The notes under the pieces: model-generated
The model's input: the letters and a program-made list of their open reading frames with translations, nothing else
The model's database searches: none
What the model was told of the DNA's origin: nothing
Part shown: in pieces, positions 15,586 to 63,639 of the stretch
Layout: each line of letters opens with the position of its first letter
How positions within the stretch are numbered: the stretch's first letter is position 1
Translations under genes and position numbers: made by a program
From: Podarcis pityusensis
Lineage: Eukaryota
Direction: 5' to 3' (one strand)
NCBI GenBank assembly: GCA_964106645.2
Contig: CAXKZF020000230.1
Length of the DNA stretch: 64,000 bases

Positions 15586-15685
15586 GACATAACACCTTGA
15601 GCGGAAACGAGTTGTAGCATATCAGCCCTCCCTGGTGGTGTCACCAAGAGGCTTGCCGAGCATTGTTGTGCTGGGAAACCGACTT

Positions 15686-15770
15686 GTCACGCTCCCTACG
15701 CCAGGATGAACTGGATCAGGTTCGGTGGGTTGAACGGGTGTTCTCTCAGCCTTACGGCACCCCTGGTGAC
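15686..15770 (-). ncRNA. TPP riboswitch
   Basis: Minus strand GTCACCAGGGGTGCC..GGCTGAGA..ACCC..GAACCTGATCCAGTTCATCCTGGCGTAGGGAGCGTGAC, upstream of ykoF. Confidence 0.96.
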
Positions 15771-16316
15771 TTACCCGACCATACCACAGCTAGGGTCCTG
15801 GCGTGTCTCCAGCGGGCTCGGTAAGCCAAAGCGGATGGACGCCCCAAGTCCTTCTTTCGTGAGGTTTATGCGGGTAGCATGGTGCATCCGTCGCACGCGA
15901 ATCCGGCCCTAGTTCACCTTTCGGACTCGACCACCCGCTAGGAGCTCATTATCCATCCCGCTTTTACTATCCAACTCACCCTCGAGATCAACCACGACAC
16001 AAAAAGCGAGGCCGACTCGACTTCTCCCCGCTCATTGCGTACGAAGATAGCGAGCGGCAGATAATCGTCGAAGCCCGTTCGCTGAATGTTCAAACTGTTG
16101 ATCTGGTCCTCGAGACTCTCGACGTCGATGGACTGGGGTGAAGACTCCACCTTAAGACTTTGGTCTAGCGGCACAGTGACCCCCTAAGTGAGGTTCATTC
16201 TAGAGCGCTGCTAGGTGAAGTAAGGCGCAGTCGCAGCCTGTCCGATAACGACCAGCTTCGTTTGACGTGAGGACTCGGCCTGAGCACCACGTCAATGCTA
16301 TGGTTGCCACGATCTA

Positions 16317-28908: not shown

Positions 28909-31413
28909 ATGCTCAAGGCACTATTTGGCGACAAGCGCAACAACATCATGAAAGACCTCCCGTGGCATGAAATCAAAGATGAGATCATGCACAACCGGGA
29001 CGGCTCTTACGTCACAGGCTTTTTCGTCGATCTGCCTCAGACCGTTTTCGTTCCTGACTTCGTTTACCTCGTGACACTCCTCAGGGGCGGCTTGCAAAGT
29101 GACCTGCAAGAACGCATGCAACTCCGCTTCATGCTCGAAGCTGGCCCCGCCAACAGGGAAATCTTAAAGCGCGTCCGCAAACGCATTACTGCCCCCGAAC
29201 GGGGCTTGCGTTACCTCCTCGAAAAGCGCGCTGACATGCTCGAGCAGGACTGGGAGCGAGGCAGCGTCATCGGCTGGCGAGCGTACGTGCTAGTCCGCGT
29301 GAACACAAAAGCGAAGAAGTTCTACACCCTGACAGAAGCTGCCGCCAAGGAACGAAAGGAGCGCTCTCACCAGGTTAGGTCCGACCTCATGCAGGCCTTT
29401 ACAGCAGCGGGGTATAAGGCCAGCACCATGGGAGACCAGGATATTTTTCGGCTGGTGCATCGGTATATGAATCCGGGTCAGTGGCATTACGACCAGGCGG
29501 ACTACAAACCCACGTGGCAGCGTTACGCCACCAAGAGCGTCGAGCAGGTCGAAGGCAATCGCCCACCAACACTCAGGTCGCAACTCGCAGAGTCCACCAT
29601 CGATAACAAACGTGCCGGGCACCTCATCGTCGATGACCATTACGTCCGCATGATGACCATGAACAAGCAGCCGGACCAGCAGACGTTCGTGACGATGATG
29701 CAAGACGCCTTCAAGGGCGGCGAGAAGTTCTTTGTAGTGATCGACCTCTACCACCAGCCCTACGAACATGGGGCGACCGTCACGCGAGCCAGAGCCAGGC
29801 GCTTTAAGGCAGCCGCCGAGCAGACCGACACGGCCGTGGACGCAGAGACGAAAATGATGGCCGAGGAAACCGCTGGGCTGGCGGACCACATGGTGCGTCA
29901 TGGCGACCACCAGTTTTTAGTGAGTGTCGGCTTCATCCTTTACGACACGAATCTCAAGCACCTGAATAACCGCATCGAAAAGCTTCATAAGGCGATGCAG
30001 CGTGTGCCAGGCCGCCCCTTCCGCATCTTGGCTCAGGGCCTCTTCACTCCCTTCCTGGACTTCGCTCCCTTTTCAGGGCGCTCGTACTCCGAGCGGGTGA
30101 GCTTGACCACCACCAACGTCGTGCACCTCTTCCCTGTAGATGGCGAGTGGCGAGGTGCAAAAAAGCCCATCGCTTACTTCCGTAACCGTTACTGGGGCGT
30201 GTCGGGCCTCGACGCTTTTGAAGGTACTAACTTCAATAGCCTTATCGTCGGCAGGTCCGGGTCAGGCAAAACGTTTTTCATGAACTACACCCTGTCCGAG
30301 TTCCTGGGGGATGCCGCTACCCAAGTGGTCATCATCGACCGGGGGAGTGGCTACCTGCCGCTCGTGAAGGTCGCTGAGGGCGTGACTATTCCCTTACGTC
30401 CAGGGGGAGGCACACGCATCAACCCATTCGACATTCTGCCCGGACAGAATGCGCCGAGTGACATGGAAAAACAAAATCTTCTTAAGGTCATCCGGGCAAT
30501 GATTCCTGGGCAGGACGGCTCGGATTACGAGATTGAAAACAACATCCTGATGGCCGCCATCGATCAGCTCTACCGCGGGGCTGTGCATTACGACCGTGAG
30601 ACAGAACAATCCGTTTTTCGGACACCCACCATGACCGACCTGTACAAGAAACTCACGATCCTGACCGAAGTTGGACAGGTCAGGGCCAGCGACAAGGTCA
30701 GGGAAATTGCTTATAACCTCGCGTTACGCCTGCAAGCCTGGACGGGCAACACACCCCTCGGGAAGTTCGTCGATGGCCCCACGAACGTTCCCCTTTCCCA
30801 AGCTAGAACAGTTTATTACGACACTGAAGGGATTGCGTCTGACAAGCAACTCAAGGTCGTAGGTGTGCTCCTCATCGCGAACCTGGTGTGGCGGCGCGTA
30901 AGTCAAACCCTTGGCCAGAACACCCTTGTGGTGCTTGATGAAGGCTGGTCGATGCTGCAAGAGTCACTCGAGGCGAGATCGTTTGTCGATGAAATGTACC
31001 GCCGCTTCCGGAGGTATGGGGCAGGCATCTGGTCGGTATCCCAGTCTTACGACGATTTCAAGGGTTTGCCGGGCATCACCAACAACGCTGAGATGTTCTT
31101 TGGCCTGAGGGTGGATGAGGAAGAGAGGCGCATTTGGCGTGAGGCGATGAAGTTGCCGAAACGAACCCTGGAGCACTGCGCAAGCGTGCACCAGAAGCCT
31201 GGAGAGTACAGCGAAGCCATGTGCATGTTCAAGCGTGAAACAGGCTGGGAGGGAGGCATTATTGCGGTTCACCCCACCCCACAGGACTACTTCTGCTTCA
31301 CCACGAAGGATGCGGAAATGGCCCTTCGTGAAAAGGAGCTCGAGGCGAACGGTGGCGACTGGATAGCGACTTTAGAAGGCATGGGTCGTGGCGACTTAGC
31401 AACGGCAGCTTAG
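28909..31413 (+). CDS. virB4: VirB4/TraC-family conjugation ATPase
   Basis: GRSGSGKT, IIDRG, INPF, VVLDEGW, RRFRRYG, SQ. Confidence 0.9.
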   Translation: MLKALFGDKRNNIMKDLPWHEIKDEIMHNRDGSYVTGFFVDLPQTVFVPDFVYLVTLLRGGLQSDLQERMQLRFMLEAGPANREILKRVRKRITAPERGLRYLLEKRADMLEQDWERGSVIGWRAYVLVRVNTKAKKFYTLTEAAAKERKERSHQVRSDLMQAFTAAGYKASTMGDQDIFRLVHRYMNPGQWHYDQADYKPTWQRYATKSVEQVEGNRPPTLRSQLAESTIDNKRAGHLIVDDHYVRMMTMNKQPDQQTFVTMMQDAFKGGEKFFVVIDLYHQPYEHGATVTRARARRFKAAAEQTDTAVDAETKMMAEETAGLADHMVRHGDHQFLVSVGFILYDTNLKHLNNRIEKLHKAMQRVPGRPFRILAQGLFTPFLDFAPFSGRSYSERVSLTTTNVVHLFPVDGEWRGAKKPIAYFRNRYWGVSGLDAFEGTNFNSLIVGRSGSGKTFFMNYTLSEFLGDAATQVVIIDRGSGYLPLVKVAEGVTIPLRPGGGTRINPFDILPGQNAPSDMEKQNLLKVIRAMIPGQDGSDYEIENNILMAAIDQLYRGAVHYDRETEQSVFRTPTMTDLYKKLTILTEVGQVRASDKVREIAYNLALRLQAWTGNTPLGKFVDGPTNVPLSQARTVYYDTEGIASDKQLKVVGVLLIANLVWRRVSQTLGQNTLVVLDEGWSMLQESLEARSFVDEMYRRFRRYGAGIWSVSQSYDDFKGLPGITNNAEMFFGLRVDEEERRIWREAMKLPKRTLEHCASVHQKPGEYSEAMCMFKRETGWEGGIIAVHPTPQDYFCFTTKDAEMALREKELEANGGDWIATLEGMGRGDLATAA

Positions 31414-38611: not shown

Positions 38612-39894
38612 GTCAGATACCCCGCTCTAAAGAGACGGGGCTTGTCCTTGAGAGCAAACATGGCCCATTTTGCGACCATCTCCCAGAACAGTAGGCTGTC
38701 TGATATCAGCCCTAGCGGCGATATTCCGCGCCGCTACTTTGTCAGCGTTTTCGGCATAGCCGCACGCCTGACAGACAAACTCGGCCTGAGTCTTACGGTT
38801 CGCCTTTTCGCAATGTCCACACGTGGGGCACGTCCGGCTGGTATTGCGCGGGTCAACTTCGACCAGCTTCACCCCAGCGAGGCGAGGCTTATATCGCAAG
38901 AACTCTCCGAGTTGTTGGAACGCCCAAGAGTGCAGGTCGTCCCGCTGACTGCGCTTAACCTTTACGCGCCCCCGGATGCCTATGAGCTTTTCAACGGCAA
39001 TCCCGAGGCGGTTGCATTCGGCAGTCTTGACAATGGCCTTAGCGACCACGTGGTTAGTGTTGCGAGCAAAACGGGCCTCACGACCCGAGAGTTTTTTGAG
39101 CTTACGCTTTGCACTTTTAGAGCCGCACTTTTGCAGACTCTTTCTCAGGCGGCGGTGCTTCCGGCGTATCCGTTTGACCTTTTCTCCGCTGTACGACATG
39201 CCGAGGCTGTCCGTAGCCAGCTCAACAATTCCGAGGTCGATTCCCAAATAGCCCTCAACATCTTCGGGCGTCGGCTCAGGCACTTCGCATGTTGCCAAAA
39301 GGTAGAACTCGCCGCCCGAATATACAAGGTCGGATTCGCCTTGCTGAAACTTGAGCCACTCGAGCTGACGCTCCCCCGTCGTAAAGAGCATTTCTTGACG
39401 GCCTTCAAGCGTCCAGATGTTGACGCTGAACTTGTCCAGTTTCCATCTGAGGATGCGGGCATCGTAGGCAATCGCGCCGTGCAGCCTAAAGCTGCGCTTG
39501 ATGGCCTTATCCAGCTTGTAAGAGTCGGCTACTTTCCCTTCGCACCGCACTGCCATTTGAGCTGTCAGCTTGAACCGTTCTCGCACGTCGTAGTAGACGC
39601 GTTTATGGAGGCTGAATTGTCTAAACGTCTTGGTGTCCCAAGCCACGTCCGAGATGTAGTTACACGCTTCGTTGGCACGCTCAAGGGTTGCCAAGAGCGC
39701 CGCGTGTTGCTCGGGTGTCGTCAGGAGTTTGACTTTAGAAGTCAGCTTCACGACGCAATTATAGCGTATTTTCAACGCCTTGAACGTATCCTCTTAGCGC
39801 CCTTGACGGCAGAAAGGGCAAGGCTACCGCCTTGCGGACTGCGCTCCTCTCCGGTTTGGAAAACCGGAGTATCCGCTACGTCCACGTCTTTTTT
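38612..39894 (-). mobile_element. IS200/IS605-family TnpB-only (IS1341-type) element
   Basis: Left-end hairpin CTCCGGTTTTCCAAACCGGAG after TCAT; right-end AAGCCCCGTCTCTTTAGAGCGGGGTATCTGAC; no tnpA, no target duplication. Confidence 0.9.
38627..39775 (-). CDS. tnpB: RNA-guided endonuclease TnpB
   Basis: RuvC I GIDLG, RuvC II IAVEKL, TSRTCPTCG..FVCQACG zinc finger, RuvC III NADKVAARNI. Confidence 0.95.
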   Translation of the reverse strand: MKIRYNCVVKLTSKVKLLTTPEQHAALLATLERANEACNYISDVAWDTKTFRQFSLHKRVYYDVRERFKLTAQMAVRCEGKVADSYKLDKAIKRSFRLHGAIAYDARILRWKLDKFSVNIWTLEGRQEMLFTTGERQLEWLKFQQGESDLVYSGGEFYLLATCEVPEPTPEDVEGYLGIDLGIVELATDSLGMSYSGEKVKRIRRKHRRLRKSLQKCGSKSAKRKLKKLSGREARFARNTNHVVAKAIVKTAECNRLGIAVEKLIGIRGRVKVKRSQRDDLHSWAFQQLGEFLRYKPRLAGVKLVEVDPRNTSRTCPTCGHCEKANRKTQAEFVCQACGYAENADKVAARNIAARADIRQPTVLGDGRKMGHVCSQGQAPSL

Positions 39895-47843: not shown

Positions 47844-48580
47844 TTAGTAGTTTGAATCTTGAGTTCGGTCATCCTCCTGTAAGTGATCGAACGAGTAACC
47901 TTCTAGCTGTTTCAAATATAGGTGTGAATATTCATCCTGTAGAGTCATGAGTTCACTGTGGGTGCCTACTTCAACAATTTCGCCGTGATTTAGTACAATA
48001 ATTGAGTACGCATTGCAAATTGTATTGAAACGATGAGAGATCAGGAGTGACGTCGAATGTTTGAAACTCCTTTCGACGTTTACGAGAAGGCGAGCCTCTG
48101 TATCTGCGTCTAGTGCGTAAGTAGGCTCGTCCAAAATTACAAGTGAAGCGTTACGCATAGCGGCGCGGGCTATAGCGATTCTCTGCCATTGACCTCCTGA
48201 TAGATCGACGCCGGTATTTTCGTAGTCATCAAAACGGCGACTGAGTAGCGTATTGGTTCCGTCTGGCAACTCGCTTATCATTTCATCGAGTTCAGAAACT
48301 TGCAAAGCAAAGGGTATCATCGTTTCAGCTTCAGGATTATCAATGTCCCCTACTGCTATGTTCTCAAAAGGCTAAGGTCATATTGCTGAAAATCTTGAAA
48401 AACTGCGCTAAGGTTCTTTTTGTACGCTTCCAAGTCAAGAGACTCTATATCATGACCGTCCCATAAGATTTTGCCTTCGGTCGGTTTGTACATTCGAGTG
48501 AGAAGCTTCACCACAGTTGACTTTCCCGAACCGTTAAGGCCTACTAAGGCTGTTGTTTTATTGGCGGGGATGGACATATT
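47844..48580 (-). pseudogene. ABC exporter ATPase domain remnant (low GC, 5'-deleted, frameshifted)
   Basis: GLNGSGKST, VFQDF, LSGGQWQR, LDEPT, ISHR. Confidence 0.85.
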
Positions 48581-48841
48581 TATACGCGAGCCTCTGCCGT
48601 CACGCAGCCCGGCGCATGGCCGGGACGCTGATTCCCATTCTGGTAGGGGAGAACACCAGCCCTGAGCAGTTCGAGCGGATCTTTGGCCGCGTCTATTCGG
48701 CAACTTCAGCCTCGGAGATCCCGGCGCTCATCAAGCGGGTGCTGCTGGCAACCCGGCGGAGCTGAGTCTACGCGTGGCCCCAAGGGGCAAGTAGAACGAA
48801 CGCGCGCTCAGGGCGCGCAGGCCCAAGCCAAGGAGGCCAGT

Positions 48842-48964
48842 ATGGGCAAAGCCAGCCGCGTCCGCATCCCCGCAGGGCATCGCCCTCGGCGACACACCCG
48901 CGTTATGCGCGATAAGCGTACTCGCCGCGCTCGCGACAAGCTCCGCCGGGAACTCTCCCACTAA
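48842..48964 (+). CDS. 40-aa Arg-rich peptide
   Basis: AAGGAGG RBS; MGKASRVRIPAGHRPRRHTRVMRDKRTRRARDKLRRELSH. Confidence 0.55.
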   Translation: MGKASRVRIPAGHRPRRHTRVMRDKRTRRARDKLRRELSH

Positions 48965-49259
48965 ACCCACAGGGATGTTCGCAAAGCCACCAAAGGGCAG
49001 AAAGCACAAGCGAGTAACCCCGAGTAGTGGCGCGAGCGTCCCTCAGCGTTTACACGGACGCGTGCCTCGATGACCTCCCTGCGGTCGGTCCGGCACGCGA
49101 CCTCAAAAGGGTAAAGTCCGCACTTTTGCGGGTAACCACCGCACTTTACAAAAACTAGGCACCGTCCAACACGGCTCAAACACGCGCTCAGAAACGCATT
49201 AAGGCTTAACGAGCGCACGCTACTCGTGCAGCCGCTCCCTCAAAGGGAGCGTGATGAGC

Positions 49260-49466
49260 ATGATTGTCAGCGTAAAGAGCCTCTACAGCGGCACCCTCAA
49301 CCACATGGACTTGCGGGTAACTCGAGAGCAGCTCGAGCGTTGGCACAAAGAGGGCGAAGCGATCCTGGTGGCGATGCCTAACCTGAATGCCGACGAGGTG
49401 CAGTTTCTGGTGTCGGGCATGACCCCACAGGAGCGGGTGGCTCGGTTTGGTCCGCTCGCCAGATAA
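49260..49466 (+). CDS. Small phage/plasmid-type hypothetical protein, family A copy 1
   Basis: W..G..I...MP.L....FL.SG.TP.E pattern shared with 49952..50155. Confidence 0.75.
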   Translation: MIVSVKSLYSGTLNHMDLRVTREQLERWHKEGEAILVAMPNLNADEVQFLVSGMTPQERVARFGPLAR

Positions 49467-49555
49467 AAAAGAGCACGCCCTTGGGGGGCGCGCAGTCTGA
49501 AGGTGTTCCTCGAAGAGGCCGTGCTTCGGGGAACATTCTACTACCGGAGGCGATC

Positions 49556-49855
49556 ATGACTAAGGAACGAATCGTCTACGTCGATGGCGACAGTTGCTGG
49601 CTGGAGACTCCCAAAAGCGACATTGAGGAGCTTGATCTGGACGCCTTCAGCATGGCGTACGCCTATAAGGACGGTGACACGCTCTACCTGAGCTAATTCG
49701 ACGAGATGCCCGCGTACCTCGAAGCGGCTGAAGCTGCGGGCTGGCACCTCACCCTCAAACCCGTCATCTCGGAAGGGAAGAGCAAGCTGGTGGTGGACCT
49801 GCCGCACCTGCTCGCCCCGAAAGAAGCCGACGGCTTCTGCTACCGTTACGCCTGA
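49556..49855 (+). pseudogene. Small hypothetical protein, family B copy 1, in-frame TAA at 49694
   Basis: Aligns across the stop with 51144..51404 (YKDGDTLYLS*FDEMPAYL..A.A.GW vs YEQGERVFLEEDQDAPLFM..A.A.GW). Confidence 0.7.
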
Positions 49856-49951
49856 GCGAAAAAAGGCGCTCGGGTGAGTACCGAGCAGTCGGGAAGGGTC
49901 CCTTGTAGCAGGCCGTGTCTACGGGGGACATTCTACGTCTGGAGGTACTGG

Positions 49952-50155
49952 ATGATCGTCGCGAAAGTCTCACCCATGAACGGGCAGGTCAATCAGCTCG
50001 AACTGCCCATCACCCAAGGCGCGTACGAAGCGTGGCGCTCGGGTGCCCTGATCCAGAGCGTCATGCCGCACCTCTCGCCCGTCCAGCGTGAGTTTCTCAT
50101 CAGCGGCTACACACCCGAAGAGCAAAACATCCTGTTCGCTCCCTACAACGAGTAA
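49952..50155 (+). CDS. Small hypothetical protein, family A copy 2
   Basis: GGAGG RBS; LIQSVMPHLSPVQREFLISGYTPEE. Confidence 0.78.
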   Translation: MIVAKVSPMNGQVNQLELPITQGAYEAWRSGALIQSVMPHLSPVQREFLISGYTPEEQNILFAPYNE

Positions 50156-50262
50156 GCCCGGATCGGGGTAACTCGAGCGACAAAAGTAACGCGTCCGGAG
50201 GACGCAGAAAAGAGCTATAGGGAGCAAAGGGTTCCCTAGCATTCAGCCTTAGGAGGCACAGC

Positions 50263-51012
50263 ATGAAAGGTATCAACGAAGCAACATTTGTCGGCGCAGT
50301 AGCCACCAGCGAACTCCGTTACACCACCGGAGGTATGGGCATCCTCGAGCTTACCCTCGCAGGGCGCACCCCGGTCGAAACCGACGGGGGTGAAACCAAG
50401 CACCTGAGCTTCTACCAGCGCGTCAAGGCGTTCGGAAAGTTCGCCGAGTCGCTCTCGGAGAGTATCAGCGTCGGTGACGTGGTGCACGTTGAAGGGCGGT
50501 CGGATTACCGCTCGTGGGACAGTGAAAACGGCAAACGCTCCAGCGTCGAGGTGGTTATCGAAACCATCAACACGCTCAATCCCGAGCACTTCACCATCGA
50601 GAATGACACCAAAGGCCAGCCGGTACTGGTCGAGGGCGTTAACGAAGTGACGCTCGGCGGGAACCTCACTAAGGACGCCGAACTGCGCTATCTGCCGACT
50701 GGCGCGGCTGTTGCTGCTTTCAACATCGCTGTGAACGAACGTGTCGGTAAGGACGAGCGCGTGGGCTTCCACCGTATTGAAGCGTGGCGCGCGCTTGCTG
50801 AAGCGAACGCCGAAGCCGCCAAGGGGGAAGGTGTCATCGTCACCGGGCGGCTCGTGAACGAGTCGTGGGACGACAAGGACGGCAACCGGCAGTACGGCAC
50901 CAAGGTCGAAGCCACCCGCCTCTACCGCGTCGCTGCCAGGGCCGACCGGCCAGCAGCCCCGCCGCCCGTTCAGGACGAAAAGATCGCGCCTGAAGCCGAT
51001 CTACCCTTCTAG
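50263..51012 (+). CDS. ssb: Single-stranded DNA-binding protein, Deinococcus/Thermus two-OB-fold type
   Basis: Two N(E)..G....ELRY repeats, GRLVNESW, acidic DLPF tail. Confidence 0.95.
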   Translation: MKGINEATFVGAVATSELRYTTGGMGILELTLAGRTPVETDGGETKHLSFYQRVKAFGKFAESLSESISVGDVVHVEGRSDYRSWDSENGKRSSVEVVIETINTLNPEHFTIENDTKGQPVLVEGVNEVTLGGNLTKDAELRYLPTGAAVAAFNIAVNERVGKDERVGFHRIEAWRALAEANAEAAKGEGVIVTGRLVNESWDDKDGNRQYGTKVEATRLYRVAARADRPAAPPPVQDEKIAPEADLPF

Positions 51013-51099
51013 AAATTATCCCAAGGCGGGGCCGGTTGGCCCCGCACCAGCACCCCCTGACCCAACGGTCAGGTTCAACCCAACAGAACCCAATAAGAC

Positions 51100-51131
51100 G
51101 CGCGGGAGCTTCGGCTCCCGCGCTATTTTTT
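51100..51131 (+). terminator. Rho-independent terminator after ssb
   Basis: GCGCGGGAGC-TTCG-GCTCCCGCGC-TATTTTTT. Confidence 0.85.
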
Positions 51132-51143
51132 ATGGGAGACACC

Positions 51144-51404
51144 ATGCACAAGACTTTGAACTTCCACAACGACCCCGGACATGGCTGGCTAGAGGTCGAG
51201 AAACCTGACCTCATGGCGCTCGGGATTGCCGAACAGATCACCCCCTTCTCGTACGAGCAAGGCGAACGCGTCTTCCTCGAGGAGGACCAGGATGCCCCCT
51301 TGTTCATGAGGGAGGCTCGAGCCACCGGCTGGCGCGTCGAGACCACCGACTGCTATACCCCCGGAAGTAGCTTCGTCCGGAACCTCGAGCCCTACCGTCC
51401 GTAA
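51144..51404 (+). CDS. Small hypothetical protein, family B copy 2 (DPGHGWL...LEED type)
   Basis: FHNDPGHGWLEV, ITPFSY, FLEEDQDA. Confidence 0.8.
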   Translation: MHKTLNFHNDPGHGWLEVEKPDLMALGIAEQITPFSYEQGERVFLEEDQDAPLFMREARATGWRVETTDCYTPGSSFVRNLEPYRP

Positions 51405-51437
51405 AAGGAGCGCACCCGAGGCGTGCAGCCCAGAGGT

Positions 51438-51803
51438 ATGGAAAAGATTACGGTGGTGAAAAGGGGAGCGCTGCGTCGGGACGTCAACCGCTTCAGTGTC
51501 GGCAGAGGGAGTAGCGGCACGGGCAAGGGTTGCACACCCCTGCACGAACTCGCCAACCCCTTTAAGATCAAGCCTTACGGGCAATATGAGCGGGGCGAGA
51601 CCTTAAAGCACTATGAGGCTTACCTGCGCGAGAAGATCACCGAGCGGGATGAAGCTATCTGCAGGGCGCTCAACACTCTCTGGCTGGCTGCCAGCAAAGG
51701 CGAGATCGAACTCGAGTGTTTCTGTGCTCCGCAAGGGTGCCACAGCGACGTCATCGTGAAGCTGCTTAACGAGGTAGCTCGAGCTCGGGACCACGCAACC
51801 TAA
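51438..51803 (+). CDS. DUF4326-family protein
   Basis: VGRG..LANPF, LECFCAPQGCHSDVI. Confidence 0.85.
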   Translation: MEKITVVKRGALRRDVNRFSVGRGSSGTGKGCTPLHELANPFKIKPYGQYERGETLKHYEAYLREKITERDEAICRALNTLWLAASKGEIELECFCAPQGCHSDVIVKLLNEVARARDHAT

Positions 51804-51859
51804 AAGGGTACGCGCCCCCAAAAAGGCGGGGGCGCACTGGAGTGAGCAAGGAGGTGGTT

Positions 51860-52387
51860 ATGGTTCTAGCTGGAACAGGACATAGACCCGCAGACTTGCT
51901 CACAGTCGGTAAAGGCATCTACCGTGACTCGGGCTTGCTGGCTCGGCTCGACGAACGGCTTATCGATCTGGCGGTGGCAGCCCTGCGTCGCTATAAGCCC
52001 GAGCGGGTGATCAGCGGCATGGCTTTGGGGTGGGACATGGCCCTGGCAGACGCTGCCATTCGTGAGGGCATTCCACTCGTTGCCGCCATTCCCTTCGAGG
52101 GTCAGGAGGGCTGCTGGAGTGCCGACCAACAAGCGCGGTTCTGGCGGCTCCGGCGGGGGGCGACTGAGGTCGTGATCGTGTGCGAGGGCAGCTTTTCCCC
52201 GGCTTCGATGCAGCGCCGCAACGAGTACATGGTCGATTCGGCGGATTTGGTGCTGGCGCTGTGGTCCGGCAAGTCCGGCGGTACCGGAAATTGCGTTCGC
52301 TACGCTGAGTCGGTGGGTGCGCGGATCGTGAATGTCTACGGCGCGTTCGTGCGTCACTCGGGCTTGCCAGCAAGACCCCCGGAATAA
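51860..52387 (+). CDS. YspA/DUF1273-like SLOG protein
   Basis: TGHRP, ISGMALGWD, MQRRNEYMVD, SGGTGNCV. Confidence 0.9.
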   Translation: MVLAGTGHRPADLLTVGKGIYRDSGLLARLDERLIDLAVAALRRYKPERVISGMALGWDMALADAAIREGIPLVAAIPFEGQEGCWSADQQARFWRLRRGATEVVIVCEGSFSPASMQRRNEYMVDSADLVLALWSGKSGGTGNCVRYAESVGARIVNVYGAFVRHSGLPARPPE

Positions 52388-57355: not shown

Positions 57356-60300
57356 TCAATCTAAAAGTAGCCGTCCCGCAAACGGATCGATAATCCTCTC
57401 GGCCCGCAGCGTCCAGGCTTTACCACGCTTCTCGAGCCAGCCTGCGACCAAGAGCACCCGCACCGACACCATCATTGCCCGGTGCGTCTCGCCCATCTCC
57501 GGCGAGATAATGACCTGGCAGCGATCTGGACCATCTTCGATGTCGAAGAAGGCGTAGCCCTTAGCGGTCGGCGGTTTCTGCTTAACGACGACCTGCCCCA
57601 CCGTGGTGACGTAGCCATCCTTGAGCTTCATCATCGGCGTCGCGCCGAGCGCGGTAAGCTCTTGCCTCATCAGGTCGATGGGATGGACACCCCACTCGTT
57701 CATGCTCTTTAGCGCGTAATCCCAAACGATCCGCTCCTTGATACCGAGTTCCGGCAGGGGTGGCGTCTCCGGAAACGCCGAGAGTAGGGGCTTCTGGGCA
57801 GGGGGCTGGATGTTGACGAGCGCCCCGAGCTGATAGAGGGCGTCACGGCGCTTTTGCAGCCTGTCGAAGGCCCCTGCACGCACGAGCGCCCCTAGTACGT
57901 CTTCGTCGAGTCTCACTCTTTCAAAGAGGTCTTTGACACCTGTGTAGGGTCCGTACTCGAGACGCTCCAGAACGATCTTCCGGGCCGTCTCGGTGGTTAC
58001 AGGCTTCACACTTGTCAGCGGCACCCGGATGGACTTGCTGCCGCCCGGATCGCGTTCGGTACTAAAACTCATCCCTGAAAGGTTGATGTCGAGGTGGGCG
58101 ATCCCCACACCTTTGGCTTTGACATCTTGCGTAAGCGACGATCTAGGCCACATCCCCGGCTCCTCCGTCAGAATCGCTGAAAAATACTCAGCGGGAAAGT
58201 GGTAACGCAGCCAGGCCGAGGTGTAAGCGTGCATCCCGAAGGCCCACGCATGGCTCTCGGCGAAGCCGTAGCCGCGAAAGGTGGCGCACATGGCGAACAC
58301 GCCGGTCGCCTCTGACTCCGTGAGACCCGACTTGCTTTTGCACCCCGTGATAAAGCGCTTCCTGTCATCTTCGATCTCCCAGTCCTCTTCATACGAAGCC
58401 ACCTTTTTGCGGAACGCTTCGGCCTCGGTCCACGAGAAACCCGCGACCTGCGTGGCGATCCTCAAAACGTCCTCCTGAAACAGCAACACCCCGTAGGACT
58501 TCTCAAGGATTGGCTCGAGGCTCTTGTGAATATAGGTCACGGGCTCGAGGCCCTTCTTGCGTTTGACGTAGGGCTGCACCGTGCCGCTCTGAATCGGGCC
58601 GGGGCGGATGAGCGCCACCTGATGCGCGAGGTCTTTGAAGCTCGTAGGCTGGACATCGACGGTGATGTGGGTCTGGGCGGGCGACTCGATCTGAAAAATG
58701 CCCATCGTGTCCCCGGCGCGGATGCTGCCCCATACCTTAGGGTCGTCGGGCAGGTTGCCCAGCTCGAGCCAGTTGTGTTCAATCCGGAAGACCTCCTCAC
58801 GACACCTCTCGAACACGCCGAGCATCCGGAGTCCCAGCAGGTCGAGCTTGATGAGGCCCAGTGCTTCACTGTCATCCTTATTAAACTGGATGAGCCTTAT
58901 CCCCCCCTTGGAGCGTTGCCGCGGGCTGTAGTGCGATAGCGAGGTCTTGGAGAGAATCACGCCTCCGGAATGCGGGGTGATGTGCCGCACCGTGCCCTTC
59001 TCGAGCCCCTCCAAAAGCCTTATCAGCACGGGCTTGATGGGCGCGTTCTGCAACACCGCGTCGAAGATCTCTTGCGCTTTTCTGGCTTTGTGAGGCCGGT
59101 GGCTGCGAAAGTCCCGACCCAGCTTCTCGGTAAGCTCGTCGCGCCACACCTTCGGGATGCCGAGACCTCGCCCCAAGTCCTGCACCGCCGAGGGCAGCTT
59201 GTAGGTCTGACGGTTGCAGACCATAGCGTGCGTGTTCTGCCCAAACCGTCGTTCGGCCCAGGCCAGCACCTCGTCTCGCCGGGAGGAGCCGATGTCGATG
59301 TCTACATCGGGTAAGCTCGTCCTCCCCGTGTGCAAAAACCTCTCGAAGAGGAGATCGTGCTCGATGGGGTCTACGGTCGTAATCCCCAGCAAGTAGCAGG
59401 TGACCGACGCAGCGGCGCTCCCCCTTCCCGACGCGACGATGCCATGACTGCGACAGTAGTCGGTAATCTCGGCGGCAAGGAGGAAAAACTCGCTGAGGCC
59501 CAGCGACTTCATGGTGACGAGCTCTTGCTCGAGGCGCGTTTTCGCTGCCGAGAAGTTGGTATTGGCGTACTTCTCGCTCAGGGCGGTATAGAGGCGCTCG
59601 TCGAGGTATTGATCTAAAGTCGAACCTTCAGGGACACGGGCGGGCGGCGGTATGAGGCGCTGGGCAAGCAGGTCGAGGGCGCAACTCTGCGCGATGACCT
59701 GGGCGTTCTGGAGGCCATCGGGGAAGGGCAGCGGGTGCCGGGGGAGCCGTTTCCATTCCTCCGGGTCGGGGATGTGATGGCGGTCGTTGCGAGGCCGCAG
59801 CGGGTGAAACTCGTAGATGGTGATGCCGAGCCGTCCACACACCAATGTGTCGTAGATGGAAAACATGTCCGGCGTAGCGTAGCGCACCTCGGGAGCCGAG
59901 ACGACGGGTAGCCCTCTGTTCGGATAGTGCGCAAAGTCGCGCAGCTTGCGGATGATGAGCCCGTCGTCGGGGTCGGCGTTATAGGAAAGCTGCATGTAGA
60001 GCCGTTCGGGAAATGCCCCTTTGAGCGCGTCGGTGATGTCTTCTAAGTCGTAGAGCTTCCGGGCCGTCATCAGCCGTGTAGGAAAGCCTTGACGCCCCCC
60101 GGTGAGGCAGAGGAGCCCTTCGGTGTGGGCGAGCAGGACAGGCAGCGTCACCGTCTTGTCCTTGGCTTCATGCACTACCGTCAGCAGGTCGCAGAGCACT
60201 TCGTAGCCGCGCCGGTTCTGGGCGATGAGCACCAGCGGATAGGTTGTTTTGCGATACTCCACGGTAATGGTCGCGCCGACGAGCACCTTGACGCCATATT

Positions 60301-60463
60301 TGCGCCCTGCCTGCTGTGCTTCCACAGCCCCGTAGACGCCATTCTGGTCCGCTAAGACGACAGCGGGGTAACTCAGCTCCGCCGCCCTTTCAATGAGCCG
60401 CGTCGGGCTCGAGACCCCCGTACCGAAGGTGAAGTAGCTGTAGAGAATCGGCAGGGGACGCAT
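57356..60463 (-). CDS. dnaE2: Error-prone DNA polymerase III alpha (DnaE2/ImuC)
   Basis: PHP domain, GRGSAAAS, PDVDID, KLDLLGL, FQIES, YGFAESHA, OB fold QKPPTAKG. Confidence 0.95.
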   Translation of the reverse strand: MRPLPILYSYFTFGTGVSSPTRLIERAAELSYPAVVLADQNGVYGAVEAQQAGRKYGVKVLVGATITVEYRKTTYPLVLIAQNRRGYEVLCDLLTVVHEAKDKTVTLPVLLAHTEGLLCLTGGRQGFPTRLMTARKLYDLEDITDALKGAFPERLYMQLSYNADPDDGLIIRKLRDFAHYPNRGLPVVSAPEVRYATPDMFSIYDTLVCGRLGITIYEFHPLRPRNDRHHIPDPEEWKRLPRHPLPFPDGLQNAQVIAQSCALDLLAQRLIPPPARVPEGSTLDQYLDERLYTALSEKYANTNFSAAKTRLEQELVTMKSLGLSEFFLLAAEITDYCRSHGIVASGRGSAAASVTCYLLGITTVDPIEHDLLFERFLHTGRTSLPDVDIDIGSSRRDEVLAWAERRFGQNTHAMVCNRQTYKLPSAVQDLGRGLGIPKVWRDELTEKLGRDFRSHRPHKARKAQEIFDAVLQNAPIKPVLIRLLEGLEKGTVRHITPHSGGVILSKTSLSHYSPRQRSKGGIRLIQFNKDDSEALGLIKLDLLGLRMLGVFERCREEVFRIEHNWLELGNLPDDPKVWGSIRAGDTMGIFQIESPAQTHITVDVQPTSFKDLAHQVALIRPGPIQSGTVQPYVKRKKGLEPVTYIHKSLEPILEKSYGVLLFQEDVLRIATQVAGFSWTEAEAFRKKVASYEEDWEIEDDRKRFITGCKSKSGLTESEATGVFAMCATFRGYGFAESHAWAFGMHAYTSAWLRYHFPAEYFSAILTEEPGMWPRSSLTQDVKAKGVGIAHLDINLSGMSFSTERDPGGSKSIRVPLTSVKPVTTETARKIVLERLEYGPYTGVKDLFERVRLDEDVLGALVRAGAFDRLQKRRDALYQLGALVNIQPPAQKPLLSAFPETPPLPELGIKERIVWDYALKSMNEWGVHPIDLMRQELTALGATPMMKLKDGYVTTVGQVVVKQKPPTAKGYAFFDIEDGPDRCQVIISPEMGETHRAMMVSVRVLLVAGWLEKRGKAWTLRAERIIDPFAGRLLLD

Positions 60464-60702
60464 CAGTCGGAGATCCGCGAGAGCGTCCAGGCGTCACCCG
60501 ATTTATAAACTTCCCAGATGTCGCCCGTCTCGAGTTCGACCTGGTAGTAGTCCCTGGGCAGTTCATCCAGCCACCACGCGCCCCCCGCTCGCCAGGAGTC
60601 GAGGATCCGCGTGACCGTAACGGTATCCCTGGGTCCCTTAAGCCCGCACGGGTGTCCGTTCTCGTTCTCGATGATGTTGACCGCTGTCATCATGAGTTTC
60701 AC
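60463..60702 (-). CDS. Small ImuB C-terminal-like (DUF6504-like) protein
   Basis: ILDSWRAGGAWW..RDYYQVE..W; lies between imuB and dnaE2. Confidence 0.75.
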   Translation of the reverse strand: MKLMMTAVNIIENENGHPCGLKGPRDTVTVTRILDSWRAGGAWWLDELPRDYYQVELETGDIWEVYKSGDAWTLSRISD

Positions 60703-61837
60703 GCATGACCTCCTCTCCTGTAGAGCGAACGACCAGCCGCATCTGCTCATCCGGCGCGTTCGAGTAGATGTTGTGCTCCACGACCTTCAGAATCGCTCTT
60801 GGGTAACGGTCTTCGACAGCGGCGATGGCCAGCTCGAGCCGTTCTTTCTTGGGCCAAAGGCTTCCCTGAATGGCAGGCAGGGATAGGCCGCCGAGTTCGA
60901 GGGTCAACCTGTCGATGCCGAGGGGCTGGGCCTTAGTGTCCTCGAGGGTCAACAGCGCCAGGCGGTAGATCTCCTCGTGACGGTGTAGAAAACGCTTGGA
61001 CAAGCGCGACGCTTTGTGCTCGAGTCCTTGCGCGAGCGCATGGATGCTGAGTCTTGAGGCGACCTTTTTCCCCAGCTCGGCGGAAAGCTCTTTGGATAAC
61101 CGTTTCAGGACGGGCTCGATCTCGAAAGGTTCAAAGATCGCCTCTTCGAAGGACAGGCCGAGGGAGAGGCGCGGGGCCGGGGTGTAGCGCCCCAGGACCG
61201 TTCGGTAAGGCCCGAACAGGTAAGGCATCAGGTGCTTGCCCGGCTTGCCCAGGAACGCACTCGCCTGGGACTTGCTCCACTGCCGCAGTTGCCCAGCCCG
61301 GTTGATACCGAGCAAGCCGAACTTGGCTAGCAGCCGCTGACTGAGGCCGACGCCCCGTAAGAAGTAGAGGGGCAGCGCGTCGAGAATAGCAGCTTCGTTG
61401 TCTTTGCTGATGACCTTGACCCGGCCTGGAGACGAGATGAAGGCCGCCAAAGTGGCCACCTCGAGACTCTCAGCCATGCCTACCCTGATCTTGTAGCTCT
61501 CCGCGAGCTGCACCGCGTCGGGTAGCTCCAACTCCAGATAGACCCGCCCGATACTGGGAGCCTCGAGCGTCCTCGTGAGGCCCGACAGCTCTTCGACGAG
61601 CCTTTCCCAGCTCGCCGTGAGGTAGACACTCGAGGTCTCGACAACCTCCAGATCGGGTACTTTGGCGATCGCGCTGGGTAAGCTCGAGCCCGCTTTGATG
61701 CCCTGCGCCCTGGCCATCGCAGAAGCGTGCATGACCTTAGTCTTGCTCACCGCGACCAGCGGAATCTGGGCCAGACTCGGTTGCTCCCACTCCGCCAGCC
61801 AGAGGGAGAATGGTTCGTAGAGGGCGGCCACAATCAT
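60638..61837 (-). CDS. imuB: Y-family polymerase-like accessory protein (ImuB/ImuY)
   Basis: ARAQGIKAG..L.SA...P.L, LRGVG..LGI...GQL; DinB catalytic acidic motifs not evident. Confidence 0.85.
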   Translation of the reverse strand: MIVAALYEPFSLWLAEWEQPSLAQIPLVAVSKTKVMHASAMARAQGIKAGSSLPSAIAKVPDLEVVETSSVYLTASWERLVEELSGLTRTLEAPSIGRVYLELELPDAVQLAESYKIRVGMAESLEVATLAAFISSPGRVKVISKDNEAAILDALPLYFLRGVGLSQRLLAKFGLLGINRAGQLRQWSKSQASAFLGKPGKHLMPYLFGPYRTVLGRYTPAPRLSLGLSFEEAIFEPFEIEPVLKRLSKELSAELGKKVASRLSIHALAQGLEHKASRLSKRFLHRHEEIYRLALLTLEDTKAQPLGIDRLTLELGGLSLPAIQGSLWPKKERLELAIAAVEDRYPRAILKVVEHNIYSNAPDEQMRLVVRSTGEEVMRETHDDSGQHHRERERTPVRA

Positions 61838-61991
61838 CGCCGTTTCTGCGTTCTGGACGGCAGAAACACCCCGTTTATGCTAGAATACGAGTAGGGCAAG
61901 AGGCACCTCCAGTCAGTGTCTTTTCGCTCACGTTAGGGGCGCACGGTATCCCGCCAAAGATGAAGTGCGTCCCTGCCTTTTGGTCCTTTTC

Positions 61992-62600
61992 CTAATTCAC
62001 AGCGCTCCCCTCGAGCAAATCGGCCACCAGATCCCCGCGCAAGAGTCCGGAGTAAACGCCGTCCACGGCGATGCGGTCCACGTCCACCTCGAGGCTCGGG
62101 AAGTCGGGGTTGTGTGGTCGCAAGAGGATCGTGCCGTTAATGTAATGATCCAGATATTTAAGCGTCGCGTCGCTGTTATCCACCCTGACCGCGCAGACCT
62201 CACCACTCTTGTAGGCACGCTTTTGCAAGATGACCACGTCGCCATCCTGAATGGCGTCGGCCATCGAATTTCCTTCGACTCTAAGCCCAAACCTGTCGGG
62301 ATAGAAGGGGAGACGCAGGTAGCCCTCGGGGTACTCGAGCGCTTCGGCGAGCGATCCGGCACGGATGTAGCCGATAAGCGGAATGCCCGCGCGTCGCAGA
62401 CGGATGTTGGGCGTCTTGCCCCGGCCCCTACTCTCGACGCTCAGGTAGCCCTTGCGCTCGAGCGCCCGAAGATGCTCGCTTACTGTGACGACGTGAATCC
62501 CCAGCTCCCTGGCAAGCTCGCTCGGCTGGATGCCGCCGCGCTCTTCCTGCTTTTGGATGGCGGCCCAGAGACGGGCCTGCTGCCGGGTCAGGTCGCTCAC
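61992..62600 (-). CDS. lexA: LexA-family repressor
   Basis: LTRQQ winged helix, HLRALERKGY, Ala-Gly cleavage site (IRAG), catalytic Ser (GNSM) and Lys (TLKY). Confidence 0.93.
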   Translation of the reverse strand: MSDLTRQQARLWAAIQKQEERGGIQPSELARELGIHVVTVSEHLRALERKGYLSVESRGRGKTPNIRLRRAGIPLIGYIRAGSLAEALEYPEGYLRLPFYPDRFGLRVEGNSMADAIQDGDVVILQKRAYKSGEVCAVRVDNSDATLKYLDHYINGTILLRPHNPDFPSLEVDVDRIAVDGVYSGLLRGDLVADLLEGSAVN

Positions 62601-62718: not shown

Positions 62719-63639
62719 GTGAACTCATTTGCCTCTTCTACAGAAGATGAGCTGCAGCAGCTTAGGGAAGTCCTGCGCCTCCCGGGTTGTGTGGCATTTG
62801 TGGGTTCTGGACCATCAACAGGCAAAGGTAAATACAAATCATGGTCTGGGCTTGTGAGGGCGGTTTGTAAAAAGTGCGGATTAACTCTACATAAAAGGCA
62901 CTTGGAGCAGGGGCTTGATGCCGAAGTGCTCATGGCACTTGCTGAGACGGCAAAGCGCTTAGATCCCGAAAATTATCGCTTGGCGCTCGCCCACGAATAT
63001 GGCTCTCCCATAACAAAAGTTCCTGCTGTCTATAAAACCCTCTTCGACCTACCCTTCTACAGTTACGTTACTCTGAACTTCGACCCACTGTTAGGTCATA
63101 TCGCTAGCATCAAGGAAAAAACGATCTGTGCATACCCCGACCTTCCACCAGCCAGACTGGCGGAAAGTGCCTATTATCTTCACGGGAGAGTCGAAAAAAA
63201 TTGCGTTCCCCATCTTGATGCGCTTGTTTTGAGTACGAGCGAGTTTGATCGAGCCTATGAGGAAAAAAGTCGCCTCTACACCTTTCTGAGAGAGCTATTT
63301 TTGGAGCAGCCTGTGGTGTTTATTGGGTGTAGCCTAAAAGAGCCTCAGATAAGACAACTCTTCGCATTGACCAAGGACCTGGCTTTTGACCGAGAGGCTC
63401 GAACTGGCAACACACTACCAAGGCGGTTTATCTTGCTTCCTAATATCTACTATGATGCTGTGCAAATCGACAAAGGTCGCGAAAAGGAAGAAAACGCCGA
63501 CTATTTGAGTAGCGACATCACAGTCGTAAGATATCCCAATCCAGACGGCTCCTATTCGGGCTTGGGTAAAATGCTCGAGAGCCTCATTGATCCCATTATC
63601 CCTCGGCCGAGTCAATTCGGGGAACCCGAACTACGCTGA
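62719..63639 (+). CDS. SIR2-like (SIR2_2) domain protein
   Basis: FVGSGPS..W..L, VTLNFD, YLHG, VVFIGCSLKEP; lower GC. Confidence 0.88.
   Translation: MNSFASSTEDELQQLREVLRLPGCVAFVGSGPSTGKGKYKSWSGLVRAVCKKCGLTLHKRHLEQGLDAEVLMALAETAKRLDPENYRLALAHEYGSPITKVPAVYKTLFDLPFYSYVTLNFDPLLGHIASIKEKTICAYPDLPPARLAESAYYLHGRVEKNCVPHLDALVLSTSEFDRAYEEKSRLYTFLRELFLEQPVVFIGCSLKEPQIRQLFALTKDLAFDREARTGNTLPRRFILLPNIYYDAVQIDKGREKEENADYLSSDITVVRYPNPDGSYSGLGKMLESLIDPIIPRPSQFGEPELR

Follow-up and report, generated by a model that had tools for sequence, protein, structure and literature searches.

The anti-defence genes and ssb of plasmid leading regions are located on the transferred strand, or T-strand (PMC11541004), and in plasmids F, ColIb-P9 and pESBL they are preceded by Frpo/ssi sites (ssp1-3), stem-loops proposed to be active on the transferred strand only, in both transcription and priming (PMC11541004, PMC12672017). 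Known single-stranded DNA (ssDNA) promoters come nearly all from enterobacterial plasmids, where searches for long stem-loops carrying -35/-10 boxes revealed them. The motif described here bears on how leading-region genes are activated in other phyla; it is a hairpin that recurs in a small-gene array at positions 48790-51860 of a 64,000-nucleotide (nt) stretch of contig CAXKZF020000230.1 (hereafter, the window), from the Podarcis pityusensis assembly GCA_964106645.2. Judged by its sequence, the window belongs to a Deinococcota conjugative element, and its presence in this assembly is probably that of a co-assembled cobiont or contaminant contig. A Trueperaceae-like host is suggested by a related element with Rep, primase and ArdC homologues in common with a Truepera metagenome-assembled genome (MAG). 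Like Frpo/ssi sites, the hairpins stand in a putative leading region before ssb and anti-defence genes, and the same activity, confined to the transferred strand, is proposed for them here. Frpo/ssi elements, however, are large stem-loops that rebuild -35/-10 sequences and drive operons, whereas these hairpins span 14-25 nt and occur once per gene.

An initial reading of the sequence (the first-pass annotation) had reported eight hairpins in successive intergenic gaps of this array, and all coordinates and arms were confirmed, together with the AG that follows six of them, the AC that follows two and the RC that precedes six. The copies are assigned to the minus strand, on which they probably fold (the template strand). 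Copy 1 (48802-48818), a 6-bp stem with AC before and AG after it on the plus strand and a covariance model score of 22.6 bits, sits 24 nt 5' of a 39-codon basic open reading frame (ORF). Copy 2 (49215-49229) precedes gene A; the small leader hairpin that comes next masks the Shine-Dalgarno sequence (SD). Copies 3 (49473-49493) and 4 (49868-49886) precede genes B and A', respectively; stem position 3 of copy 3 is A.C on the plus strand (G.T on the template), as it is in the related loci L006 and L025. Copy 5 (50191-50205), 5' of ssb, is kept in seven related arrays, copy 7 (51412-51426) lies 11 nt from the DUF4326 start codon with no well-spaced SD, and copy 8 (51812-51835), 24 nt 5' of the YspA/SLOG gene, moves together with that gene in L006, L007 and L013. 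These seven share a conserved motif. The same does not hold for copy 6 (51026-51045, no strand assigned), a doubtful member that has neither the RC nor the A-run, is absent through deletion in L005, a close relative, and is missed by the covariance model.

The motif is strongly concentrated in the array. A loose hairpin pattern had 13 starts at 48781-51870 against 2.3+/-1.6 in 300 dinucleotide shuffles, corresponding to a rate of ~4.2/kb in the array and ~0.5/kb, roughly nine times lower, elsewhere in the window on either strand. A strict pattern, requiring the A-rich run and RC, had 7 starts in the same interval (five true copies, one nested duplicate and one chance match inside ssb) against 0.09 in shuffles, with a maximum of 1. 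A covariance model built from 14 copies of the 15-nt class retrieved other copies on the plus strand of all related arrays and gave no match above 14 bits in the rest of the window; within the array it also missed copy 8, which belongs to the long class.

The anatomy of the motif was established on 65 copies (57 distinct) from the window and 11 related Trueperaceae-like loci, representing about nine other elements. On the plus strand it consists of an A-run, maximal at -7/-6 (47 and 48 of 57 copies), followed by RC (R at -2 in 52/57, C at -1 in 46/57) and by a stem of the form GC-R..Y-GC, and then by an A, with G as the next base in 43 of the 57 copies. The half-sites RCGCR/YGCA are conserved, and no special-loop preference was found among the Trueperaceae copies. 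GC..GC-A formed part of the filter for this set, and the survey was therefore repeated with this requirement dropped: of 59 perfect gap hairpins that follow an A-rich sequence, 37 were closed by GC..GC, and of these 30 were followed by A and none by G, the other seven being mostly plus-strand terminators. The expectation that stem interiors differ and still pair was clearly borne out, with stem positions 3-5 paired in 92% of cases, compared to 46% with shuffled arms (91% vs 46% when only one copy per gene family was used), and with 16 double-sided changes in the alignment, a number reached in 0 of 500 shuffles. The covariation and the foot survey therefore indicate that structure and foot sequence are both under selection. 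The predicted DNA folding energy of the hairpins is about -6 to -12 kcal/mol. A literature search, whose coverage mostly excluded subscription papers, returned no description of the motif or of Deinococcota leading-region hairpins. The hairpins are a real, conserved and apparently undescribed family of cis-elements that marks early genes one by one.

This one-element-per-gene logic is supported by the behaviour of the motif across loci, where it stays attached to the gene that it precedes: three different sequences are found 5' of the YspA hairpin and two 5' of the NADAR hairpin, and copies occur directly 3' of plus-strand terminators in L006 and L012. The motif spans 27 gene families, and the genes served include ssb, ArdC-N, a DarG-like macrodomain, NADAR, SLOG, DUF4326, RNase H and small unknowns, while a gene for a secreted 147-aa protein, DsbA and a Xre/RES toxin-antitoxin pair are without it. 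Together with a VirB4 gene in the window (28909-31413), this gene content upholds the leading-region context that had been proposed. In L005 (6978-8322) the motif stands before both the DarG-like macrodomain and the NADAR gene, whose products likely protect incoming ssDNA from DarT-type ADP-ribosylation. Of the 53 copies that could be measured, 24 have the foot of the motif 21-30 nt from the start codon, ~24 nt being typical, and 20 have it 48-70 nt away, nearly all with a second leader hairpin in between; four copies have the foot 7-11 nt from the start codon and no well-spaced SD. Twelve leaders, belonging to about nine unrelated genes, have an SD whose first base is 11-14 nt past the foot, and this spacing suggests an RNA that starts near the invariant A.

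The leaders also offer an internal comparison for the strand on which the motif folds. In the motif stems, the cells that depart from Watson-Crick pairing are A.C in seven instances (five families), G.T in two and A.G in three, whereas in the adjoining AGGCCGTG leader hairpin 23 cells are G.U and 5 are unpaired (Fisher p=0.04 for the contrast by family). In addition, the -1 C and +1 A that flank the stem in 46/57 copies become a T.G wobble on the minus (template) strand. On the basis of these mismatch types and of the wobble, we favour the view that the leader hairpin behaves as plus-strand RNA and that the motif is formed on the minus strand, which would fit the T-strand as template (PMC11541004). 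The AGGCCGTG hairpin, with its G.U-rich, RNA-type stem, occurs at 49502-49540 (plus strand) 5' of gene B, and its homologue at 49893-49934 (plus strand) 5' of gene A'; this duplicated element is conserved in nine related loci and is a candidate protein-binding or translational-control RNA element. A further leader hairpin, that of ssb, lies at 50218-50238 on the plus strand.

We favour a reading, to which we assign an even chance of being correct, in which the hairpins are initiation sites on the transferred single strand, used as template for gene-by-gene RNA synthesis. Of the three options put forward by the first-pass annotation, ssDNA priming or promoter sites, suggested by the minus-strand CTG at the hairpin foot, is the one best supported. 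The minus (template) strand would enter the recipient during conjugation and, on this single-stranded, SSB-coated DNA, each short GC-clamped hairpin would persist, flanked 3' by a T-rich tail. The foot (5'-CTGC...GCGY-3') would be the docking site of an enzyme that synthesises RNA, which would start at or near the invariant T and yield an RNA that begins with pppA(G), has its SD ~12-13 nt in and covers one gene. This RNA could serve as early message, as primer for second-strand synthesis or as both, and conversion to double strand would erase the start sites. The genes would enter ahead of any operon promoter further upstream, and with a site of its own each could therefore be expressed in entry order.

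Two groups of described systems come close to such a scheme. Promoters of the N4 virion RNA polymerase (vRNAP) are short template-strand hairpins with conserved as well as free-but-paired positions, used in an SSB context, and transcription starts 5' of the stem, as proposed here (PMC4496689). Their stem is fixed at 5-7 bp, their 3-nt loop is conserved and their +1 lies four bases from the stem, whereas in the present motif the loop is free and the foot conserved; the corresponding N4 test (template GNA triloop, 5-7 bp stem) failed in the Trueperaceae set and was satisfied only by the analogous Thermales hairpins described below, which share GNNA-type loops with N4 promoters. No N4-type single-subunit (T7-like) RNA polymerase was found among the scanned proteins of these incomplete elements. 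In G4-type origins and in the RSF1010 ssiA/RepB' system, a small hairpin is likewise a primase landmark on SSB-coated DNA (PMC13037366), and an element-encoded primase is a feature common to DnaG/ssiA systems and elements related to this one. In 43/57 copies the template carries CTG beside the hairpin, with an invariant T and with the G as first stem base, matching the pppAG start of Escherichia coli DnaG, which initiates pppApG at CTG (PMC2532735). In ssiA, the start (T32) is situated 3' of the hairpin, into which the primer reads (PMC8567376), whereas here the conserved T lies 5' of the hairpin, and G4 and ssiA sites number one or two per replicon, unlike the many sites seen here, which are tied to ribosome-binding sites. 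Membership in the RSF1010 ssiA/RepB' system was rejected, given a T on the 5' side of the template stem and an element primase of TOPRIM rather than archaeo-eukaryotic primase (AEP) type. Membership in the Frpo/ssp family was also rejected, with no long stem and no -35/-10: TANNNT occurs near only 6/57 copies, at no fixed offset, and a promoter scan of the plus strand of the array gave no match. A sigma fork-junction mimic with A(-11) was rejected as well, there being no T at the -7 equivalent.

Candidates for the enzyme would be an element-encoded DnaG-like primase, the host DnaG or the host RNA polymerase with a plasmid factor. At the head of the array in L029, a 395-aa protein carries TOPRIM motifs and is predicted to fold like DnaG primases, the zinc-binding-domain region included; a DnaG-like primase is also present in L032. 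Homologues of the L029 protein were found on 19 Thermus and 4 Deinococcus plasmids, and another adjoins ArdC in the Truepera MAG, where a copy of the motif precedes that ArdC. Conjugative TOPRIM primases are transferred to the recipient and prime incoming DNA (PMC5512222). The more specific proposal that the element's DnaG-like TOPRIM primase, or a plasmid factor, reads the mini-hairpins and makes gene-length translatable RNAs, as a private early-expression system, appears rather improbable. If true, the primase would act as an ssDNA-dependent transcriptase, and each lineage would have its own co-evolved pair of site and enzyme, the sites being marked by a conserved foot in Trueperaceae, a GGGGCC stem in Thermus and a TGYC loop in Oceanithermus. 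This DnaG-like family on Deinococcota mobile elements (L029:5649-6836, L032:2937-4640, L030:2694-3641) has an N-terminal zinc-binding-like domain that appears to be without most canonical cysteines. Thermus plasmids also encode a sigma70-like protein just 5' of their small-gene array (L030:28515-29261, L192:48593-49348).

Small-gene arrays with per-gene hairpins are present on the Thermus plasmids NZ_CP092444.1 and pTA69 and on Oceanithermus pOCEPR01, each lineage having its own signature. The Thermus arrays include ssb, Rad52 and, in one case, ArdC, and in both genera the hairpins lie about 21-29 nt 5' of many start codons. Among those with four-base loops, 16-29 nt from the ATG, the template strand reads GNNA in 17/24, compared to 9/92 elsewhere on the same plasmids (p=6e-9), and 13 of these 17 loops are not GNRA. 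GNNA-type DNA mini-hairpins occur at N4 promoters, RSF1010 ssiA and the G4 origin, and bind SSB poorly (PMC13037366). By analogy only, since the Trueperaceae loops are free, the Thermales loops support an ssDNA function for this architecture. The recurring forms are GGGGCC-TNNC-GGCCCC in Thermus and GC-TGYC-GC in Oceanithermus, ~25 nt 5' of start codons and with template GNNA loops (L030:30.9-35.3 kb, L192:31-46.5 kb, L193:32.5-37.4 kb). Arrays of Deinococcus ficus and D. proteolyticus have other recurring hairpins, closer to the start codon. In D. ficus pDFI3 (L031:18.7-28.4 kb), the array of which carries three ssb genes, these are YTCACCC...GGGTG hairpins ~10 nt from the ATG, resembling anti-SD mimics, and in D. 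proteolyticus pDEIPR02 (L003) a different repeat hairpin, CCTCCCAG...CTGG, is seen.

Several observations weigh against initiation on the transferred strand. Neither a relaxase gene nor an oriT was located, and the transferred strand is thus deduced from gene orientation and mismatch bias; the latter stems from five versus two independent families, and antisense RNA would fit minus-strand folding equally well. The fixed 24-nt spacing is also expected from ribosome clearance at an mRNA hairpin. The primase gene is absent from the window and adjoins Rep in L029, where it may simply serve replication. DnaG-type primases normally make short RNAs only, so that messages as long as a gene would call for a different or atypical enzyme. 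Finally, the covariance model found nothing convincing in Thermus or Deinococcus plasmids, which leaves the Thermales hairpins as analogues and led us to reject sequence homology to the Thermus and Deinococcus hairpins; 5 of the 24 Thermales hairpins have the GNNA loop on the coding strand, and among 30 short Trueperaceae loops only one is GNA or GNNA on the template, while three are GNA on the coding strand.

The best-surviving rival, which we regard as unlikely, places the hairpins at the RNA level, as elements of a polycistronic early message in which an endonuclease cut, in the A-run or at the 3' foot, or a block to 5'-3' decay would give stable one-gene units. A GC hairpin with an A-rich single strand 5' of it is the usual setting of RNase Y/E sites, the spacing of ~24 nt matches ribosome clearance, the leader hairpin in L005 begins exactly at the A after the motif, and some hairpins of Thermus pTA69 have GNRA loops on the coding strand. 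The plus-strand stems, however, are nearly without G.U pairs and contain A.C, unlike the adjoining leader hairpins, and the stem is followed by A and never by G, although G stacks equally well. Copies located directly after plus-strand terminators (L006, L012), and the failure to find a sigma70-type promoter at the array head or a candidate endoribonuclease in the arrays also speak against RNA processing.

We consider it improbable that the hairpins are antisense (minus-strand) intrinsic terminators, one per gene, curbing antisense read-through across the array. On the minus strand they do present a hairpin with a T-rich tail and a fitting wobble, five window copies pass a terminator scan and, when the T.G closing pair is counted, 20/57 copies have 6 or more T in 8. 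Yet the 8-nt tail has 4 or fewer T in 23/57 copies and TTT right after the stem in only 11, so that the minus-strand terminators put forward as a possible refutation of a dedicated element do not account for the set overall, while staying viable for those 20 copies. An invariant CTGC...GC foot across 27 gene families is needless for terminators, the position is fixed relative to the plus-strand SD, and ordinary genes of the same loci have no such element.

Ranked after these, and improbable too, are ssDNA structures without initiation, either SSB-free landmarks or roadblocks like ssp2 of F, which stalls second-strand synthesis (10.64898/2026.01.09.698686), and double-stranded operators for a Reg576/ArdK-like repressor of establishment genes. 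As roadblocks, the hairpins are small in terms of their folding energy. As operators, their conserved half-sites would be consistent with the repeated upstream elements that regulate establishment genes in p576 and pKM101 (PMC6294495), and the pKM101 CUP and p576 Reg576 promoters also place a repeated element 5' of each establishment unit. CUP, however, is long (over 400 bp) and Reg576 consists of sequence-conserved double-stranded promoter/operator repeats (PMC6294495), whereas the present element is ~30 nt, conserved in structure and devoid of a -10. With only 6/57 copies having a -10 hexamer within range, and at no fixed offset, there would be no promoter to repress, and a fixed-spacing palindromic operator was rejected in view of spacers that vary from 14 to 25 nt and are internally paired. 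Lastly, attC-like or HUH-type recombination sites shuffling gene cassettes, also raised by the first-pass annotation, are scarcely credible and largely refuted: in common with integrons, a folded element accompanies each small gene and gene content is variable, here differing among related arrays, with each hairpin staying with its gene, but there is no R-box, no fixed crossover and no GTTRRRY core on the plus strand of the array, the 14-25 nt hairpins are far shorter than attC, no integrase was seen beside the array among the proteins scanned, the loss of gene B left junctions that vary by lineage (at the foot in L012 and L013, in the A-run in L008), and no clean single-cassette joints were found in four read sets (contigs only).

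Repeat finders do not detect this compact motif, and analogues of it reside on plasmids of culturable, genetically tractable Thermus, which would therefore allow a direct test of sigma-box-independent, gene-by-gene expression or priming of incoming ssDNA. It also flags unannotated small genes that are likely to be establishment or anti-defence genes.

The array of the window, encoded on the plus strand, comprises a VWA remnant, the basic ORF, A, B (interrupted), A', ssb, B', DUF4326 and YspA. It is truncated on the left, as only a 3' remnant of the VWA gene of an AAA+/VWA pair persists there (48553-48765); cargo has replaced the left part, and relatives extend leftwards via AAA+/VWA, RNase H, ArdC-N and primase. 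The short basic ORF (48843-48964, 39 aa) is kept as DNA, without an intact start, in L012. Gene A (49251-49466) belongs to the phrog_20898 family, for which no function is assigned, and gene A' (49952-50155), of the same family, is 37% identical to it. Gene B (49556-49855), a paralogue of B', is a single gene interrupted in this strain by a TAA stop (49694-49696), with relatives having a G at 49694. The ssb gene (50263-51012) is of the two-OB-fold Deinococcus-Thermus type, and B' (51144-51404) encodes a small protein that occurs on other plasmids too. The DUF4326 gene (51438-51803) and the YspA/SLOG-family gene (51860-52387), the final gene with the motif, are followed by the secreted 147-aa gene and a DsbA-like gene. 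An intrinsic terminator-like hairpin with a T-run lies after ssb (51100-51131, plus strand) and is kept in relatives. Such hairpins stand directly 5' of the SD of the next gene (window 51100-51143, L012:757-847, L029:7480-7523), preceding the SDs of B', AAA+ and orf165 and often 3' of a motif copy; they may silence read-through from double-stranded DNA.

Searches with the array and its neighbours returned little else. BLASTN of the array against PLSDB gave no match, alignment of Ssb and the 147-aa protein against genome and metagenome contigs gave nothing useful, and an atlas search with a 339-aa protein encoded 3' of the array was uninformative. The leader pattern was not found in metagenomes, and viral pattern matches were unrelated single ones. 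Among public sequencing runs, none with RNA was found to hold the locus. The sole Rfam match in the window is a TPP riboswitch (15675-15774), with none above gathering score in the array. The best plasmid relatives of VirB4 are from Thermus (38%), other transfer genes of the window are common to Thermus and Deinococcus plasmids, and a TnpB gene lies inside the transfer region (38627-39775). By inspection only, LexA-like, Y-family-like and DnaE-like genes at 57356-62600 resemble an SOS mutagenesis cassette, and a stand-alone SIR2-like gene is located at 62719-63639. Within the array, a structured, non-coding-like stretch (48845-49048) shows 89% identity in L012, and a conserved CGCACTTTT-containing repeat (49113-49146) is found 3' of the VWA stop codon in L008, L025 and L026; either could be a small RNA or an operator.

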